Sequence record: PQ464590.1
Direction: 5' to 3' (one strand)
DNA length: 64,000 nucleotides
Under the pieces are notes generated by a model. It searched no databases. It was not told the DNA's origin and worked only from the letters and a program-made list of their open reading frames with translations. Position 1 is the first letter of the stretch; each line of letters starts with the position of its first letter. Made by a program: the position numbers and the translations under genes. Of this stretch, positions 17,240 to 62,106 are shown piece after piece.

Positions 17240-18151
17240 TTACAAAGAACTCAGTAGTATGTTAGCACGGTTGCCAACTTGTTTGTACCACAAAGAATTT
17301 TGTATTTCTCTCTTGAACTTCTTTGGGTTATCACGTTTTACACTCTTCCATAATTGTTCAAATGTACTAAGTTTATCAACACCCATTGTGAACGCCATTT
17401 CGTATAGAACGCGTTGTTGTTCTACTGTCAGATTCACTGCTTGTTTCTTTTGCAGGAGCAGCACGAAATCATTATACGTACGCTTCATATCTTGAACCAG
17501 TAAATCATGTGCCTGACGCTGCGTAATACCATTGCGGTACTTAATTGCGTCAGAGTCTTTCTTTCCTAGATAGTGTCCGTAACCAATCGTATAATTTCCT
17601 TTGATATCCTTGTACGGATAGAATTTGGAATTCTTGTACGATGGTCCTGTCTTCCCCCCAAGGAGGCGACGTTTATTGTTAGCCTGGGCTTCTTTAGACC
17701 CTTCGGCTTCCTTGATGTGATTGATAATTTCAGCATCTAAAATACTGAAGTGTACAGTCACATCAGGTAATGTAACATGCATCAAATCATTATCATTCGG
17801 TACGTAGATTGGCACGGAAGTATGTAATGGAACAGTATTGTTTACCGTTTGAAGTACTGCCATATATGACTTAACCTCAACATTATACGGTGCTAACTTA
17901 TTCGCAATAATCCAGTAGCTTTCGCCAGCCTGTACTACGTACTGTTTTCTGCTCTCCAGTACAGTTGCCTTTTGTAGCGGCAATGTATGGTGCTTTTGAA
18001 TTTGATTTTGTACTACCGACTCTTTAAAGTCCGATGATGTAGTACGATCATTTTGATGTAAACCAACTAATCCAATAGCAGCGGCAAGCAACAGAAAACC
18101 TACTAATACAACTTTAGTACGTGTTTTGAGTTCTTGTATCGCTTTATGCAC
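17240..18151 (-). CDS. LysM-domain GH24 (T4-type) lysozyme with N-terminal transmembrane anchor
   Basis: TM VVLVGFLLLAAAIGLVGL; LysM YVVQAGESYWIIANK; catalytic-like EAEG...YKD...YTIGYGH; GTG start with AGGAGG. Confidence 0.85.
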   Translation of the reverse strand: MHKAIQELKTRTKVVLVGFLLLAAAIGLVGLHQNDRTTSSDFKESVVQNQIQKHHTLPLQKATVLESRKQYVVQAGESYWIIANKLAPYNVEVKSYMAVLQTVNNTVPLHTSVPIYVPNDNDLMHVTLPDVTVHFSILDAEIINHIKEAEGSKEAQANNKRRLLGGKTGPSYKNSKFYPYKDIKGNYTIGYGHYLGKKDSDAIKYRNGITQRQAHDLLVQDMKRTYNDFVLLLQKKQAVNLTVEQQRVLYEMAFTMGVDKLSTFEQLWKSVKRDNPKKFKREIQNSLWYKQVGNRANILLSSL

Positions 18152-18261
18152 AATTCCTCCTATTTGCTAATTATTGTGTAGCTTCAGCAACAGGAGTTCT
18201 AAGGCTCCGTTTGCACAAAGCCTCATTTGGACTTTCTACATAGCTCTAGTGAAACACTAGT

Positions 18262-19520: not shown

Positions 19521-19550
19521 ATTATATCACATTTTTGGGACGTATCCCAA
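19521..19550 (-). promoter_or_regulatory. Promoter of the NTGGGA-N18-TATAAT class (copy 2)
   Basis: TTGGGA-TACGTCCCAAAAATGTGA-TATAAT with perfect dyad TTGGGA/TCCCAA. Confidence 0.65.
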
Positions 19551-21272: not shown

Positions 21273-21779
21273 TTAGTTGTCTAAGCAAAATCTTGCATAA
21301 TAGTGGATACCTAGTGGATCATTCTGCGTCATTTCATCACAGAAGTCAACAATTTTTTTCATAAATTCCATGTACGTTTCTGGGATATCTCCCAGTACTA
21401 CACCGTTTTGGGAATATTTGAAATTATTCTCTGGTGATGAATATGGTTCATCTGGGCGGTCAAGGTGCTCATCGTTAGGTACATATTCATGAATACTGAT
21501 AAAGAAATTGTACTTAGGTGAATCATACTGTATAGTGTGATTGTTTGCACACCAAGCGGAGCCGAACTTACAACCGTCGCGTTTACCAGAAAGAAGAATA
21601 CCATCGTACCAACTTATATCTACATCAGTAAATCCCATATGTGTCATTACTTCAGTTGCATCTTCTTCGGATACAGAACCACGATAAATCAGACTATATG
21701 TAATAAGATTCATGTAAGCACGGATGGAATTATACCATGATTCTAAACGACGATCCATAACAATCTCCAGTTTAAACAT
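21273..21779 (-). CDS. Hypothetical protein
   Basis: 168-aa ORF. Confidence 0.65.
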   Translation of the reverse strand: MFKLEIVMDRRLESWYNSIRAYMNLITYSLIYRGSVSEEDATEVMTHMGFTDVDISWYDGILLSGKRDGCKFGSAWCANNHTIQYDSPKYNFFISIHEYVPNDEHLDRPDEPYSSPENNFKYSQNGVVLGDIPETYMEFMKKIVDFCDEMTQNDPLGIHYYARFCLDN

Positions 21780-27063: not shown

Positions 27064-27641
27064 TATAGTGTTTTTCCAAATGCAAGTGCTTCTTGGTAGG
27101 TCATTTCGGTGAATACTGGTTTCCATGTATTCTTGTCGAAATCAGTCAGTACTGAAAAATGGTCCACATCGGATAGACGCATTATACGTTTCCCTTCAGA
27201 TAGTGCCGAATCCAGTTTATCAAAGTACTCATCGTTCACAACTAGTACAATGTTTTGTTCAACACCCATACGGATTACTTGATAGCAGTTGCATTTTTCC
27301 ATATTGTAAGTACCGTACTCAACCGAGAATACTTCACCATCAGCTAGATATTTCACAGTAGGTACTGCCCAAAGACCTTGTCCTGGAATACGAGAAGGAG
27401 TGATTGTACCGTCTTTGAAGTACACCATATATGAACCAATAACTGGTGCTTCACTTGGAGTGATTTGATTTGGTATTGAATAATGATCAATGAAAAGACC
27501 ACTAGGAGTGATAGTGAATTGGTCTTGTAATTTACAAGCATGGAACTCAAATGTAGTGGTTCCTGCATTATCTTTGGTTTCTACAAAAACATCAAGATCT
27601 GGAAGGGATAATAATTTCTTAGCTAGGTCATGCGATTTCAT
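27063..27641 (-). CDS. Hypothetical protein, MKxxxLAxxLL paralogue
   Basis: MKSHDLAKKLLSLPDLDV with RBS AAGGA; C-terminus MTYQEA matches MTYEDA of its neighbour. Confidence 0.7.
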   Translation of the reverse strand: MKSHDLAKKLLSLPDLDVFVETKDNAGTTTFEFHACKLQDQFTITPSGLFIDHYSIPNQITPSEAPVIGSYMVYFKDGTITPSRIPGQGLWAVPTVKYLADGEVFSVEYGTYNMEKCNCYQVIRMGVEQNIVLVVNDEYFDKLDSALSEGKRIMRLSDVDHFSVLTDFDKNTWKPVFTEMTYQEALAFGKTL

Positions 27642-27813
27642 GTAATTTCCTTGTATATGTTCGTGATATACTCGTACCTCGTATATCAGAATTTCAATGA
27701 TCTCGATTTCACTAACGTTCATCTCGTTCATTTCAATTCATTCAATATACTTTAAGTACTTTATACTTGACACGGTTTGTGATCCAATTCCATCCCCCCA
27801 CAGGGGAGGGACG

Positions 27814-27837
27814 AAAAAAAATCAGGATAAACCTGAC
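27814..27837 (-). terminator. Intrinsic terminator closing the ncRNA
   Basis: GUCAGG-UUUAU-CCUGAU followed by a U-run (8 nt including the last stem U). Confidence 0.75.
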
Positions 27838-28278
27838 ACTGGTAGTAGTACCAATCTGAATTTGTAGATTTACTCAAAATTTGGACGGATCTTTCTTGTG
27901 CAAATTTTGTAGCATCGCTGGCGGGTTGTCCGGTTTCCAGCTACTACAGTCGCATACAACGGTCGTGTTCCTCACACGCTTACAGTACAGGCTAATTCAG
28001 CAACCAGTACTGCTGTCTCTCCGTAAAGAGACTCCCTTTCGACGGGGTAGAGTATGCTCTATAAGTCTATCGAGGCGGTATATGTCTTCTTACTCCGCTT
28101 TATAGTGCCGCTTTGCCGTGTCGCGTGTGACTTACATCTCGTTGGATATGAACGCACTTACGCTTTATTACTGACGGGTTTCATTTGCACTTCGTAGTGA
28201 ATGCTCTACTCATCTGCCCTCTACGTTTTCGAGTGGATCAGGTTCCATGTATCATGGCATTCAGCTTGGTACTATTAC
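27814..28278 (-). ncRNA. Candidate large structured non-coding RNA (~465 nt), family unknown
   Basis: Promoter at 28285-28314 and terminator at 27814-27837; 5' end (28278-28259) pairs with 3' end (27861-27842); many internal hairpins; GC richer than the flanks; no credible ORF. Confidence 0.75.
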
Positions 28279-28284
28279 ATTATT

Positions 28285-28314
28285 ATTATATCACAAAAAA
28301 TGGGAGTATCCCAT
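28285..28314 (-). promoter_or_regulatory. Promoter of the NTGGGA-N18-TATAAT class (copy 3), drives the ncRNA
   Basis: ATGGGA-TACTCCCATTTTTTGTGA-TATAAT; the dyad plus T-run may also terminate the upstream gene. Confidence 0.65.
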
Positions 28315-28548
28315 TTATTTGAATAATTTCGCCTGGTTCAAGTCTTTGTTCAACCAATCAGGATGGATATGCTCTTCTTTGATCTTTTCATTCAAGTAAA
28401 GCTGTGCTCCATGTTCAGAATCGAACCTCAAATAGTACTTGTTATCATCTGGATCACGAAGATAATTAGTACGATCATTATCACTGTAGTCATAATCATG
28501 AACTACTGAAACTAAACCATCTTTTACATCTAAACGATAATATGACAT
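28315..28548 (-). CDS. Hypothetical protein
   Basis: 77-aa ORF with GAGG RBS. Confidence 0.65.
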   Translation of the reverse strand: MSYYRLDVKDGLVSVVHDYDYSDNDRTNYLRDPDDNKYYLRFDSEHGAQLYLNEKIKEEHIHPDWLNKDLNQAKLFK

Positions 28549-28554
28549 ATGTCC

Positions 28555-28947
28555 TCACATATAAACAAATTTATCATTACTGCGTTCGAAGACTTGCTCA
28601 ACGAACTCAATATCTTTCAGTACTGTCTGTAGATCTTCAGAATCTTCAGAACGTGAAACGAGCCGGTATTTGTTATTTACTTCCGTAAAAATGACCTTCA
28701 TTACCTCGTCAGTACAGATTTCACCGTTGTACGTGATGTAAGAAGCACTCAATTTGATGTACTTCCCATCCTCTTCTAAACTGTTCTTAGCAAAAGCTGC
28801 ATCGATTCCAGTAAGATGAGAAATACTATCCTTTTTATCAAGGAAAGTAATAGTGGTCAGTACTAACTTCATTTTATCCTGAACACTGATGTTTTTCGTT
28901 GCACTAATGAACTCTAAATGAGAGAAATCAAGGTCTTTCAACATCAC
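28555..28947 (-). CDS. Hypothetical protein
   Basis: 130-aa ORF. Confidence 0.65.
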   Translation of the reverse strand: MMLKDLDFSHLEFISATKNISVQDKMKLVLTTITFLDKKDSISHLTGIDAAFAKNSLEEDGKYIKLSASYITYNGEICTDEVMKVIFTEVNNKYRLVSRSEDSEDLQTVLKDIEFVEQVFERSNDKFVYM

Positions 28948-29902: not shown

Positions 29903-30517
29903 TTAGGCTTCGGCTGTCAACTCTTTTTTGAGTTTTTTCATGTACCTGTTATACAGACCTACATGGTGGTGCATACTGGTTTCAAGGAACTCTTGAATGG
30001 ACAGTTTTTTACCCTTCTTCTTCTCCAGATTACGTTCACGTTGGCGTTGTGCATTCTCTTCATCGTGCTTCTCTACATCATCCCAGTACTGTTCAGTACT
30101 TGTATCTTTGTACAGGTCAAGGAAGTCTTGCAGATTTTCATACTTAGCACCACGTTTGATGTTACAGCGTTCACACATGGTGTTGTAGTTTTCAGTACAA
30201 TCCGGCCCACCTTTGGATTTAAGAATAGCGTGGTCCACGGTAAACATAACCTCACGGCCTTTGTGGGTGTACCCGTACACGTTCAAATGCTCACTACCAT
30301 ATACTGGGTGTGCACAAGCTTTCATACGCTCTAAACGTATCTCAGTGGCTTCTAGACCACAGTTAATGCACGTACATGAGCGTTGGAATGTCTTCACCTT
30401 CTCGAAGTCATAATGGAAGTGAACTCCTTGAATTTCCATAAAGTTCTTATCATCAGTGATGAGTTCCAGTGAACTCAAAGGGAGAACGCGTTTTACTGTG
30501 TACTTTCCACGAGCCAT
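29903..30517 (-). CDS. HNH endonuclease-family protein
   Basis: CINC...FTVDHAILKSKGG....N...MCERCN..RG. Confidence 0.85.
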   Translation of the reverse strand: MARGKYTVKRVLPLSSLELITDDKNFMEIQGVHFHYDFEKVKTFQRSCTCINCGLEATEIRLERMKACAHPVYGSEHLNVYGYTHKGREVMFTVDHAILKSKGGPDCTENYNTMCERCNIKRGAKYENLQDFLDLYKDTSTEQYWDDVEKHDEENAQRQRERNLEKKKGKKLSIQEFLETSMHHHVGLYNRYMKKLKKELTAEA

Positions 30518-37217: not shown

Positions 37218-37245
37218 ATTATAGCACAAAAAAAGAGACTGTCAA
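37218..37245 (-). promoter_or_regulatory. Sigma70-type promoter
   Basis: TTGACA-16 nt-TATAAT; the -35 box lies inside the upstream terminator hairpin. Confidence 0.7.
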
Positions 37246-48576: not shown

Positions 48577-49199
48577 GTAAAATCTATGCCTGTTTTTAGT
48601 GACATACGATGAGTGAACAAGTCATGTTCAACCTCTATCAATATGAGCTTGATTTCTTCAACTTGCTGTACTGTAGCAGTTTTCATGAACTCTGTCAATG
48701 CAGTTTTGTAGTTTTCTAAATTTTCGATGTCACGAGGTAGGAATGTCTTAGTGACATCATCCAGTAGTTCGGATTTCCAGCTTCTTTCTCCTTTCGTGAG
48801 GCGGCCTGAATTCATCAAAAAACTACTTAGTGAAGATGTGCTTTGACTGATCTTGAACACTTCTTCTTCTTTGTTATCAATATCTTCTTCTGTATAGGGA
48901 CCGTACTTTGCCAGTACTAAATTGTACAGATTATCAATTGCTTCATCATACGTCCACCCACCGCAATCACAATCAACATCGTGTGAACTCACCCATTTCT
49001 TCACTTGGTCAGCCTCGAAGTACGGAGGGCAAAACTCTACCCAGTACTGAATCTTTGTGTTCAGTGGCTGATATTTCTCAACGCGTTCCGTACTTGGGCA
49101 AACCATATGCGGATCAATGCGAATCTCAACTTCAACAAAATCCTCATTGATAAATGCTGGGTGACGCATACAGAACCAATATTTGTCGTATGTATTCAA
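48573..49199 (-). CDS. Hypothetical protein
   Basis: 208-aa ORF. Confidence 0.7.
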   Translation of the reverse strand: MNTYDKYWFCMRHPAFINEDFVEVEIRIDPHMVCPSTERVEKYQPLNTKIQYWVEFCPPYFEADQVKKWVSSHDVDCDCGGWTYDEAIDNLYNLVLAKYGPYTEEDIDNKEEEVFKISQSTSSLSSFLMNSGRLTKGERSWKSELLDDVTKTFLPRDIENLENYKTALTEFMKTATVQQVEEIKLILIEVEHDLFTHRMSLKTGIDFT

Positions 49200-49421
49200 T
49201 TAGCGTTCCGTCCTTCCAATGTAAATCACATCAACCTTACAACGAGCCTGATTACCAACTGCCCCAGTAGCTGACCGTACTGGTTTTGGCATCAACGTAC
49301 CTTTTTGATGTAATTGTGCATGTTCGATAGATACAAAGAAGTTATCACCCATGTATTCTTGTGTGATAACTTCTGCTTCTGGATTCTCAAGGAGAATCTT
49401 CGCTAAGTGTTTTGCTTTCAT
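49200..49421 (-). CDS. Small MKxxxLAxxLL paralogue
   Basis: MKAKHLAKILLENPEAEV; RBS AAGGAG. Confidence 0.7.
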   Translation of the reverse strand: MKAKHLAKILLENPEAEVITQEYMGDNFFVSIEHAQLHQKGTLMPKPVRSATGAVGNQARCKVDVIYIGRTER

Positions 49422-49441
49422 TTACACTCCTTAGTTAAGGC

Positions 49442-49554
49442 GAAAGTACTATCACCCAGGGTGTTGGTAGTTCCGAGTAGGGATACCCTGAATTAGCATT
49501 GAAGCGTACGGTCTGATACTGATTTTACCCAGATGCACGGCTTATAGTACTTTC
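49442..49554. ncRNA. Candidate ~113-nt structured RNA or cis-regulatory leader
   Basis: 11-bp closing helix GAAAGTACTAT/ATAGTACTTTC enclosing two further stems; intergenic; strand unresolved. Confidence 0.45.
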
Positions 49555-49578
49555 TATTTTTCAATTAGTATCTAGTGA

Positions 49579-49764
49579 CTAGTAATAAAATTCCATATTT
49601 TCAATGATATTTCCTAAGTCAGCTTCGAAGCTTTTATTTTTACTGAAGTTGAAAATCATACTAGAAGTCCGTATTGGACACGCTTCGTCTACCACATTGT
49701 GTTCTTCTTTTTTTGAGTTACAGTGGCGGCATTTGGTGTTGTTACTACGGAACTTGTTATTCAT
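49579..49764 (-). CDS. Small CCHC zinc-finger-like protein
   Basis: CRHC......H......CP. Confidence 0.65.
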   Translation of the reverse strand: MNNKFRSNNTKCRHCNSKKEEHNVVDEACPIRTSSMIFNFSKNKSFEADLGNIIENMEFYY

Positions 49765-49826
49765 ATTACTTATTTTTTCCTAGTTTGTTGGTAAATTAAT
49801 AGTGCCATTTCAAATGACACTTAGTA

Positions 49827-49994
49827 CTACAATCTGAAACCGTAAACTGGTTTCTTTGGGTCTTCCTCGTACTTTTCAGTACTGAAAGATTTGAATGATC
49901 CACGACCAGGAGAAGGGCATTCAAATGTACCCGCCTTGTGATATAATTTCTCTTTACCACATTTCTTGCATTTATATCCGATTAGTTCTTTCAT
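49827..49994 (-). CDS. Small CCHC zinc-finger-like protein, 55 aa (not in ORF track)
   Basis: MKELIGYKCKKCGKEKLYHKAGTFECPSPG...; ATGA overlap with the upstream gene. Confidence 0.65.
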   Translation of the reverse strand: MKELIGYKCKKCGKEKLYHKAGTFECPSPGRGSFKSFSTEKYEEDPKKPVYGFRL

Positions 49995-56767: not shown

Positions 56768-56797
56768 ATTATATCACATTATTTGGGTTTGTCCCAA
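56768..56797 (-). promoter_or_regulatory. Promoter of the NTGGGA-N18-TATAAT class (copy 4)
   Basis: TTGGGA-CAAACCCAAATAATGTGA-TATAAT. Confidence 0.65.
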
Positions 56798-60749: not shown

Positions 60750-60760
60750 TATAATTCCCT

Positions 60761-60985
60761 CTAAAAGATTTGTGAATACGCTCCTATCCAGTACAGAATG
60801 TATGCCAATCCCAAGATTGTACAAACGAATCCTAACCGCATGATTACGAACGCTATTTGATAGTATTTAGAGGTGAATCTGCCGTCCGGTTCAAGAAAAC
60901 CTTCCTTCCAGCCCTTCCATTCTAACATCATGATTACAACACTAGCAAGGTACAGTAGTACGATACCCCAGTATAAAATTACCAT
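60761..60985 (-). CDS. Small two-TM membrane protein
   Basis: Two hydrophobic segments. Confidence 0.65.
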   Translation of the reverse strand: MVILYWGIVLLYLASVVIMMLEWKGWKEGFLEPDGRFTSKYYQIAFVIMRLGFVCTILGLAYILYWIGAYSQIF

Positions 60986-61233
60986 GATAGTAATCCGTTG
61001 TGATATAATCCCAGTACTATAAATCCAATTGGATAAATGGACATGTACACGAAGTGTGCGTTACGGTTCCATTTCAAACGAGTTTTAACTTTTTCATCTG
61101 TTTCATTTGAGATGGAACAGTTCAAGTCACTCACTGCAAACGCTGGAGCCGCAAGAAATACACAACCACCGATGTAGAACCACACCATGAACGTAAAGAT
61201 AATGAACGCCCAGTGCTGAATAGTTTCCATCAT
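60979..61233 (-). CDS. Small two-TM membrane protein
   Basis: Two hydrophobic segments. Confidence 0.65.
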   Translation of the reverse strand: MMETIQHWAFIIFTFMVWFYIGGCVFLAAPAFAVSDLNCSISNETDEKVKTRLKWNRNAHFVYMSIYPIGFIVLGLYHNGLLSW

Positions 61234-61424
61234 ACCATTGCTCCAAAGGCCAATGCCAGTACTGAACCAACCACTGTCAGTGTGAGCATAATGGAGCTAA
61301 TGACGTACAAGCAGAAACGTTCTAAACGAGTTTCAGCTAAACCATTCTTACTGAATGGAATGACGCACAAAACACCGATAAAACCGATTACTGCCAGAAT
61401 TGCAAACATGTGATACAGTTCCAT
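61230..61424 (-). CDS. Small two-TM membrane protein
   Basis: Two hydrophobic segments; RBS GAGGG. Confidence 0.65.
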   Translation of the reverse strand: MELYHMFAILAVIGFIGVLCVIPFSKNGLAETRLERFCLYVISSIMLTLTVVGSVLALAFGAMV

Positions 61425-61454
61425 GATATTACCCTCTATTGTTAAAGTACTGAC

Positions 61455-61483
61455 ATCGTATCATTATCATGAACCGATGTCAA
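61455..61483 (-). promoter_or_regulatory. Sigma70-type promoter
   Basis: TTGACA-17 nt-TACGAT upstream of 61424. Confidence 0.65.
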
Positions 61484-61488
61484 GAAAT

Positions 61489-61689
61489 TTATAGAAGAAA
61501 AATCAAAATAGGATAACCGACGTAGATCAGAGCTAGACCTAACCAAATGAAGAACCATGTTTTATTTTCTTCTTCTTTAGTCGGAAACTGTGTTGAACCT
61601 AACATGGTCGTGACGAATAGCACCCACGGGGTAGCAATAGCTAATGTTATGATGATGAACAAAGTTTTCAAAATAATCATAGTAATCAT
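61489..61689 (-). CDS. Small two-TM membrane protein
   Basis: Start at the ATGA overlap. Confidence 0.65.
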   Translation of the reverse strand: MITMIILKTLFIIITLAIATPWVLFVTTMLGSTQFPTKEEENKTWFFIWLGLALIYVGYPILIFLL

Positions 61690-61898
61690 GCGAACACCAT
61701 TATAGGTAAGACAATGTATACTGATATAATCAGTGCGAAGATGGAAAGCCAATACACATAAATTATTTTGCGTGGTGGCTTATCTTGATAAGCTTGGTCT
61801 AGACCATATCCCGCAAGTAGTAAAATAACGAACAGTACTGGTGTAGCTATAGTCCATATTCCTACTATTATAAGGATGCTTAGTAAAATGCTCATCAT
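61686..61898 (-). CDS. Small two-TM membrane protein
   Basis: Paralogue-like with 61489 (IATP.LFV). Confidence 0.65.
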   Translation of the reverse strand: MMSILLSILIIVGIWTIATPVLFVILLLAGYGLDQAYQDKPPRKIIYVYWLSIFALIISVYIVLPIMVFA

Positions 61899-62050
61899 TC
61901 CACCCAAGATTCACTGTCTTTGTGTTCACCACATTCATCACAGCTATATACATACACTGTTAGCCAATTATCTGCTTTATCTCGAACTACATCTTTGAAT
62001 TTGTCCGAGTAACTTTGTGTATCTTTTTCACAATGTTTACACCAACTCAT
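61895..62050 (-). CDS. Small zinc-ribbon protein, 51 aa (not in ORF track)
   Basis: MSWCKHC...CDECG...; RBS GGAG. Confidence 0.7.
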   Translation of the reverse strand: MSWCKHCEKDTQSYSDKFKDVVRDKADNWLTVYVYSCDECGEHKDSESWVE

Positions 62051-62073
62051 ATGATACTCCTGTTTGTTTGATT

Positions 62074-62098
62074 AAAAAAGAGGGAGGCAATGCCTCCC
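62074..62098 (-). terminator. Intrinsic terminator after nadV
   Basis: GGGAGGCA/TGCCTCCC hairpin plus U-run. Confidence 0.85.
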
Positions 62099-62106
62099 AA
62101 TATCAA

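Follow-up and report, generated by a model that had tools for sequence, protein, structure and literature searches.

What is encoded by the longest stretch without an obvious gene in this part of the genome of the Erwinia jumbo phage Hallingskeid (PQ464590.1, 366 kb)? We analysed a window of 64,000 nucleotides (nt) from that record (record coordinate = window coordinate + 248,000), in which positions 27732-28314 (583 nt) form the longest stretch devoid of ATG-initiated open reading frames (ORFs) of 60 amino acids (aa) or more. An earlier note, made from the letters of this DNA without database searches, had described the region as the only long gene-free stretch, which is correct as to length but not as to uniqueness, as 731-1226 and 17864-18261 (400-500 nt) are also poor in ORFs. 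It had further proposed that the region is the gene of a large structured non-coding RNA (ncRNA) of a jumbo phage, and this proposal is upheld by homologues that covary, by the lack of a conserved ORF and by a genomic setting (slot C, described below) in which the unit stands alone. The G+C content of the RNA region is 44.7% (38.9% for the window), and the genes that surround it all lie on the minus strand. We conclude that the locus holds a conserved RNA fold with more than one pseudoknot, which is accompanied by promoter-like and terminator-like elements of its own and does not depend on its neighbours.

Searches with blastn found the RNA region in 71 records of Rak2-like jumbo phages (Asteriusvirus, Eneladusvirus, Mimasvirus, Alcyoneusvirus and unclassified relatives), the hosts of which belong to Escherichia, Klebsiella, Salmonella, Yersinia, Erwinia, Cronobacter, Serratia, Pectobacterium and Xanthomonas, with two to four matching places in each record. 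The matching site in each genome is a gap of 650-740 nt that is unannotated in most records and annotated with short ORFs in some. The matches to phages EJP2 (87%) and 7t3 (85%) extend no further than the gap and the RNA, so that the locus stands out as an island of conserved nucleotide sequence between protein genes that have diverged. A pattern built from the invariant positions matched 34 times in IMG/VR viral contigs, 52 times in metagenomes and twice in 'bacterial' assemblies, and the one to four exact matches that it gave per Rak2-like contig of more than 345 kb are a lower bound. After removal of duplicates, the fetched loci comprised 78 distinct copies, which fall into at least 11 sequence classes and a more divergent metagenomic clade. 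A looser pattern yielded 16 new loci in viral contigs, three of which were confirmed by the family profile as extra paralogues in the same jumbo phages, while the other 13 were rejected as chance matches. We also note that the RNA is present in CAUSEC010000004.1 (212 kb, from an Enterobacteriaceae metagenome-assembled genome; our locus L100) and NZ_JAMGZK010000045.1 (185 kb, Silvania hatchlandensis; L101), which are probably jumbo-phage contigs inside bacterial assemblies.

Base pairing was counted with our own scripts on MAFFT alignments that had not been fitted to any structure, and the counts were compared with those from 300 column shuffles and from controls in which the partner strand was slid by one to three columns. 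For helices P1, P3, P4, P6, P9 and P11-P13 and for pseudoknots PK1 and PK2, none of the 300 shuffles reached the observed pairing, and the slid controls stayed well below it (mostly 20-60%, and up to 84% for the P3 segments, which have only two to three pairs). RNAalifold, run on 32 sequences, returned 61 pairs, 37 of which display two-sided changes. The covariation among homologues that the earlier note had expected is seen in these elements, by shuffle and slide counts. The region also folds beyond its shuffles (z -4.6 for 465 nt and -6.6 for 623 nt); the complementary strand of the 465 nt folds equally well (z -5.8), so that folding energy alone cannot assign the strand. The supported helices contain 139 G-U/U-G cells as against 10 A-C/C-A cells, and this asymmetry of wobble pairs assigns the RNA to the minus strand.

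The same alignments bear on the alternative that the conservation is that of protein-coding sequence. Three tiny coding sequences (CDS) are annotated inside the RNA region in PQ464590.1 (28059-28157, 27874-27975 and 27761-27877, minus strand), and other records carry short ORFs here too, as would be seen if these CDS were real. Against this, no column lies under an ORF of at least 30 aa in more than 53% of the sequences on either strand, so that no ORF position is common to more than about half of them; the longest ORF measures anywhere between 0 and 81 aa and its place differs, most indels that separate close relatives are of 1 nt, many records leave the gap unannotated, and substitutions are pairwise compensatory. 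We therefore regard a coding role as extremely improbable, and the three small CDS, the reading frames of which are not conserved, are probably spurious calls.

Read 5' to 3' on the minus strand, the 5' domain opens with a three-way junction (28263-28198), in which P1 (28263-28258/28203-28198; 97% standard pairs and 18 cells with two-sided changes) encloses P2 (28257-28245) and a bulged P3 (28241-28214; 91-94%, with 3, 13 and 31 such cells in P3a, P3b and P3c, respectively). It continues through P4 to P9: P4 (28191-28187/28108-28104; 96%, 29 cells) encloses the invariant P5 (28177-28174/28119-28116; 96%) and an insert that is specific to each class, and is followed by hairpins P6 (28098-28075; 98%, 49 cells; found by RNAalifold and by the helix counts), P7 (28061-28048) and P9 (28032-28015), the last of which has a UACG loop, 91% standard pairs and 56 cells, with two-sided changes in seven of seven pairs. 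An invariant purine block, AAGGGAG (28040-28034), separates P7 from P9 in the alignment of 32 representatives. The 3' domain consists of P10 (28012-27983), P11 (27978-27964; 99%, 43 cells) and P12 (27948-27944/27867-27863; 100%, 58 cells), with P12 enclosing P13 (27941-27917; 100%, 42 cells), which has a near-invariant 15-nt loop, and the variable hairpin P14 (27912-27873). Two pseudoknots lock this domain. PK1 links the loop of P10 (28000-27994) to the strand after P12 (27862-27856), with 99% standard pairs, 86 cells and two-sided changes in six of seven pairs (slid controls 26-45%), whereas PK2 links the strand before P12 (27960-27956) to the loop of P13 (27929-27925), with 100% standard pairs, 14 cells and two-sided changes in three pairs. 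Further, the family alignments reveal invariant unpaired blocks at junctions and in pseudoknot loops.

Several of these helices had been drawn in the earlier note. Hairpins GUCUCUU/GAGAGAC (P9), CGUGU/ACACG (P11) and GCUGG/CCAGC (P13) are supported by covariation on the MAFFT alignments, and CCAUG/CAUGG (P2) covaries in RNAalifold but is not above shuffles family-wide. UAGAG/CUCUA (P7) and CAAAAUUUG/CAAAUUUUG (P14) are recognisable by eye in the classes that have them, but do no better than shuffles on the whole-family alignment. P2, P7, P10 and P14 fall short on that alignment, in which variable hairpins are misaligned, and P10 (CAGUAC/GUACUG) has only 71% standard pairs on alignment A3, owing to register shifts; P5, P8 and P16 (the last described below) barely vary and are thus uninformative. 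Two pairings had to be given up, as CAGCA/UGCUG is displaced by P10 and PK1, of which PK1 is solid, and the alternative GUAGC/GCUAC is displaced by P12. We also rejected a local hairpin GGUA/UACC after PK1, which has 56% standard pairs and is not conserved; its segment is part of a lineage-specific helix, P0, in Hallingskeid and its lineage. As a separate observation, the hairpin module with a conserved loop that is represented in the window by P14 sits in the P14 or the P9 arm depending on the paralogue class: it is in the P9 region in classes 6-9 and 11, in the P14 region in classes 2, 3, 9 and 10, and in both in one 121Q copy (alignments A3 and A4), and so behaves like a transposable structural module.

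The core had also been thought to be closed by a helix of 9 and 6 base pairs (bp) between its two ends. In Hallingskeid, nt 1-20 are complementary to 27861-27842 at 18 of 20 positions, and the 9-bp half (P0; 28274-28266/27854-27846) is real but lineage-specific, whereas the 6-bp half shares letters, and hence competes, with P1 and PK1, two helices whose covariation extends to every class. Family-wide, the 20 pairs are at chance level (51% standard pairs compared with 50% in shuffled columns, a value reached by 134 of 300 shuffles). A P0 of 11-13 bp, with differing letters and duplex z values of -3.6 to -5.0, is found in Hallingskeid, in 7t3 and in three metagenomic relatives (L003, L027, L028 and L033 being the loci besides Hallingskeid); it is absent from EJP2 and the other classes, most of which carry a 5' hairpin instead. 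In the Hallingskeid lineage, P0, P1 and PK1 meet at one junction, with P0 closing the whole core.

The elements that would start and end this RNA are found on either side of the core. The TATAAT at 28290-28285, which the earlier note had taken as the -10 box, is present and belongs to an extended -10 element, TGATATAAT (28293-28285, minus strand), which aligns in all ten orthologues and in paralogues; motif TGnTATAAT occurs at nine sites in the window, compared with 4.8 expected. A -35-like hexamer, TGGGAT (28313-28308), lies 17 nt upstream of it and stands where the alignment of relatives has a TGAAAC-type element. The TGAAAC-type element characterises the 'divergent RpoD-like' promoter class of phages CBB and GAP32, and this class is enriched ahead of DNA-synthesis genes in CBB (PMC5259590). 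The -35-like hexamer is overlapped by a terminator-like hairpin of the upstream gene (ORF 28315-28548), which has an 8-pair stem and a T-run (28316-28298). From the spacing to the -10 box, we infer a +1 near G28278, where the host RNA polymerase would most likely initiate on the minus strand by using the extended -10 and the phage-type -35 element, and an RNA from there to the end of the U-run would be ~465 nt long (28278-27813; the short form). The terminator that had been noted after the core is recovered by our terminator scan as an intrinsic-terminator-like hairpin (27837-27821) with a U-run (together 27837-27813). A U-run is present at this site in 39 of 56 relatives; the hairpin is absent from 8 of 32 representatives, and several classes are without it. 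Taken together, the conserved extended -10 element, the terminator-like hairpin with its U-run and the strong terminator at the end of slot C speak for an independent RNA gene.

Conservation runs ~150 nt past the terminator, to a hairpin P18 (27688-27664). The view of the gene as self-contained within ~465 nt thus fits the short form, but the conserved unit reaches ~27660, and the 3' extension (27812-27660) would bring the long form to ~620 nt in total. It begins with P16 (27808-27791), in which a C/U-rich arm pairs with a G-run (98% standard pairs); the hairpin is kept in all classes, its variation is C/U on the 5' arm only, and the G-run and AUG (27799-27791) are invariant or nearly so. A mini-ORF starting from this AUG was rejected, as by eye its length and frame vary by class and two classes do not have it. 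The extension also carries the second copy of a direct repeat. The first copy, m2 (UACCAGUGUCAGG, 27844-27832), provides with its 3' part the 5' arm of the terminator hairpin, and the second, m3 (CAAACCGUGUCAAG, 27779-27766), lies ~20 nt beyond the G-run hairpin. At seven variable positions, m2 equals m3 in 55 of 55 sequences, through nine letter combinations and at spacings of 48-86 nt. Since the letters differ among paralogues of one genome, it is each single RNA molecule, rather than a protein common to them, that accounts for the match. A 6-mer scan for a third strand able to pair with m2 as well as m3 gave only the G-run opposite the m3 pyrimidines. Inspection by eye (unquantified) shows in most classes a pairing of the m2 3' part with the stretch that directly follows PK1, the letters varying by class; likewise by eye, the P18 stem persists through changes of its letters in slots A, B and C. 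Termination right after the core would yield the ~465-nt form, and read-through would yield the ~620-nt form, which adds the invariant G-run hairpin, the second 3' closing motif and P18. We infer that short and long forms are made and that the duplicated 3' closing module may let each of them bind to one common core. A definable structural switch is suggested by the strictly concerted evolution of m2 and m3.

Clustering of neighbouring genes revealed at least three conserved genomic slots. In slot A, which is that of the window, the RNA is preceded by a 129-aa gene and followed by a Dps-like gene; in slot B, the RNA is followed by a 174-aa gene, a Dam methylase and a nucleotidyltransferase; and slot C places the RNA between two genes that run on the opposite strand. 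Because the slots are conserved, we consider the paralogues to be old and retained rather than recent mobile copies. The second Hallingskeid copy, outside the window (record 341.1-341.6 kb; L104:3425-3981), is followed downstream by a 174-aa gene and genes for a DNA methyltransferase and a cytidylyltransferase; between its m2 and its G-run hairpin, the terminator hairpin is missing. The clustering found no protein family that neighbours the RNA in every slot, and the downstream proteins fall into more than 20 unrelated clusters, which is not the constant association with a gene family that marks a leader or riboswitch. The slot C unit ends ~190 nt past m3 at a strong bidirectional terminator, and after P18 it contains just a non-conserved short ORF of 6-51 codons; a reading of this ORF along the lines of transfer-messenger RNA (tmRNA) was rejected. 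As it lies between opposite-strand genes and has its own strong terminator, the RNA in slot C is a stand-alone RNA gene and not a leader.

We then compared this RNA with known families. No covariance model of Rfam 15, which includes tmRNA, RNase P, group I and II introns, 6S, riboswitches, GOLLD, ROOL, OLE, raiA, HEARO and self-cleaving ribozymes, matched at its gathering threshold in the whole window or in 15 loci covering all classes. With E values up to 10 allowed on 27500-28600, only two chance-level matches, far below threshold, were obtained; ARAGORN detected no tRNA or tmRNA gene in the 64-kb window, and literature searches found no description of this RNA. The earlier judgement that the RNA lacks signatures of tmRNA, RNase P and group I/II introns, and is of an unrecognised class, agrees with these Rfam and ARAGORN results. 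We conclude that the RNA class is new, with GOLLD and ROOL as its nearest analogues by kind and without homology to either.

GOLLD and ROOL are large ornate RNAs that are often borne by phages or prophages, and cryo-EM has shown that they form RNA-only homo-oligomeric cages (PMC12286853). With more than 400 nt and many helices and pseudoknots supported by covariation, the RNA described here is a large ornate RNA as well: like GOLLD and ROOL, it is several hundred nt long, has invariant unpaired nt at its junctions, and is carried by phages with no associated protein gene and no assigned function. Unlike them, it gives no match to the GOLLD and ROOL models of Rfam and, where they are often near tRNA genes, lies in a window that contains none, nor did Rfam report any in the 15 family loci; it also belongs to virulent enterobacterial jumbo phages with two to four ancient paralogues per genome. 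The ncRNA001-004 of the Pseudomonas jumbo phage PA5oct were defined by RNA-seq (PMC7318152). They resemble the present RNA in coming from ORF-free regions (0.24-0.62 kb there) of a jumbo phage distantly related to the Rak2 group, and are transcribed; no structure has been described for them, and there is no sequence similarity to the Hallingskeid family, as the family profile gave only E >0.7 in nhmmer against ncRNA001, 002 and 004 (ncRNA003 was not included). The phi29 pRNA is also a structured phage RNA that acts in trans, and its loop-loop pairings, which may be inter- or intramolecular, recall PK1; it differs in size and fold, homology having been compared through Rfam only. The pRNA belongs to the phi29-type packaging motor, which is not present in these T4-like phages.

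We put the probability that this RNA acts in trans and works through its shape at about 55%. Such an RNA would act as part of a ribonucleoprotein, as a catalytic RNA or as a self-assembling RNA. The invariant unpaired nt at junctions and in pseudoknot loops argue for this, as do the absence of any conserved target-complementary or reiterated motif and the fact that the genes next to it change from copy to copy; we consider it less likely that it serves as a cis leader, a sponge or an antisense regulator. Several points weigh on the other side. The +1, both 3' ends and the isoforms of every member are read from sequence; the covariation statistics are scripted counts on related sequences and are not phylogeny-aware; and the analyses run indicated no partner protein, ligand or catalytic activity. 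Further, the conservation past the terminator, the m2/m3 duplicate and P18 before the next gene in slots A and B also fit a cis leader, and an origin transcript would also be in line with the promoter class, which in CBB is enriched ahead of DNA-synthesis genes. More tentatively, we picture a new class of large ornate phage RNA, with a ~430-nt core of two pseudoknots, a 5'/3' helix in some lineages, a duplicated 3' module that closes both isoforms and two to four ancient, non-interchangeable paralogues in every Rak2-like phage, which would work as a ribozyme or as a self-assembling or protein-organising machine. PK1, the letters of which differ between paralogues of the same genome, could then be an intermolecular contact that keeps the assemblies of the paralogues apart.

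The arrangement in slots A and B, where the RNA invariably precedes protein genes directly and in their orientation, raises the alternative that it is the 5' part of a downstream operon transcript and controls read-through of the terminator (27837-27813) or translation at P18, as an attenuator, a folding checkpoint or a polymerase-modifying antitermination RNA like HK022 put. HK022 put and other leaders of processive antitermination also follow directly after a strong promoter, precede a terminator and genes, and occur in several copies per genome, and nut/put-type elements would account for the copies found at different operons. The conserved sequence that continues past the terminator up to P18 by the start codon is in keeping with this, and since m2, through the 3' part that forms the 5' arm of the terminator, can by eye pair instead with the stretch behind PK1, a terminator/anti-terminator exchange is possible in classes 2 and 3. 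We nevertheless consider a leader unlikely. Slot C, with opposite-strand genes on both sides, its own terminator and only the 6-51-codon ORF after P18, offers no operon to read into; the downstream proteins belong to many unrelated families; the hairpin and U-run of classes 9-11 do not overlap m2, and 8 of 32 representatives do not have such a hairpin; and a ~430-nt core with two pseudoknots far exceeds the known leaders of this type, HK022 put being about seven times smaller and not pseudoknotted.

A stand-alone unit between opposite-strand genes would also suit a replication-origin transcript, a folded RNA of ~0.5 kb that persists as an RNA-DNA hybrid near the G-run/C-run and primes DNA synthesis. 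ColE1 RNA II and the T4 oriF/oriG transcripts resemble the RNA in size and folding, in having their own promoter and a 3' G-run/C-run, and in occupying several loci per genome; the CBB promoter class, the invariant G-run and C-rich partner followed by an A+T-rich stretch, and two to four copies over a genome of ~350 kb with T4-like replication fit as well. However, cumulative GC skew is monotonic across the 64 kb without an inflection at the locus (weak evidence, because phage skew follows transcription), neither iterons nor signals of an antisense regulator were seen, the C-run varies between C and U only opposite an invariant G-run, as in an RNA hairpin, and some ten helices and two pseudoknots, near-perfectly kept and with invariant loops, are a far tighter constraint than R-loop priming needs. 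An origin transcript is therefore very unlikely in our judgement. We assign a similarly low probability to a decoy or sponge, that is, an abundant RNA that titrates a host protein or a defence sensor, as the earlier note had suggested with its anti-defence idea. Its own strong promoter, its several gene copies and the invariant purine blocks resembling Shine-Dalgarno (SD) sequences (28040-28034 and 27799-27791) would serve such a role, and counter-defence is plausible in general for a virulent jumbo phage. Yet the RNA is conserved in the manner of a single compact tertiary fold, and nothing links the RNA to any defence system. Because m2/m3 is the only duplicated motif and no others are reiterated, a repeat-based sponge is the least likely of the roles that had been proposed. 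A trans-acting RNA that works through its shape remains the reading that we prefer.

Large, highly structured RNAs without a known function are rare and, to our knowledge, every earlier one (RNase P, group I/II introns, tmRNA, OLE, GOLLD, ROOL and raiA) opened a field. The present one is carried by phages that can be cultured, have been sequenced and are of interest to both laboratory and clinic; by their records, several of them infect E. coli strains of the K-12 type. Its natural variants are numerous enough to give a confident secondary structure, and its paralogues serve as internal controls. The family explains the recurring 'empty' gaps of 650-740 nt in this phage group and calls for changes in annotation, as at least three small CDS of the Hallingskeid entry, and similar ones in other records, are probably spurious and one downstream start is probably wrong. 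The downstream gene is annotated from 27731 (222 aa), which overlaps the conserved tail of the RNA. Given this conserved RNA hairpin and an SD-like AAGGA with an in-frame ATG at 27653-27639, the gene probably starts at 27641 (27641-27063, minus strand).

We note, further, that in several classes and genera genes for HNH endonucleases are found no more than ~2.5 kb away from the RNA gene (29903-30517, minus strand, in the window; 14 family loci) and may be free-standing homing endonucleases beside a highly conserved target. Elsewhere in the window, the ORF-poor stretch 17864-18261 folds just modestly above shuffles on the minus strand (z -2.4). More TGnTATAAT sites are found on the minus strand at 19521-19529, 21729-21737, 37218-37226 and 56768-56776, and on the plus strand at 49939-49947, 61001-61009 and 61722-61730; the plus-strand sites fall in the ORF-poor stretches 49170-49990 and 60750-62106 and may mark divergent transcription units.

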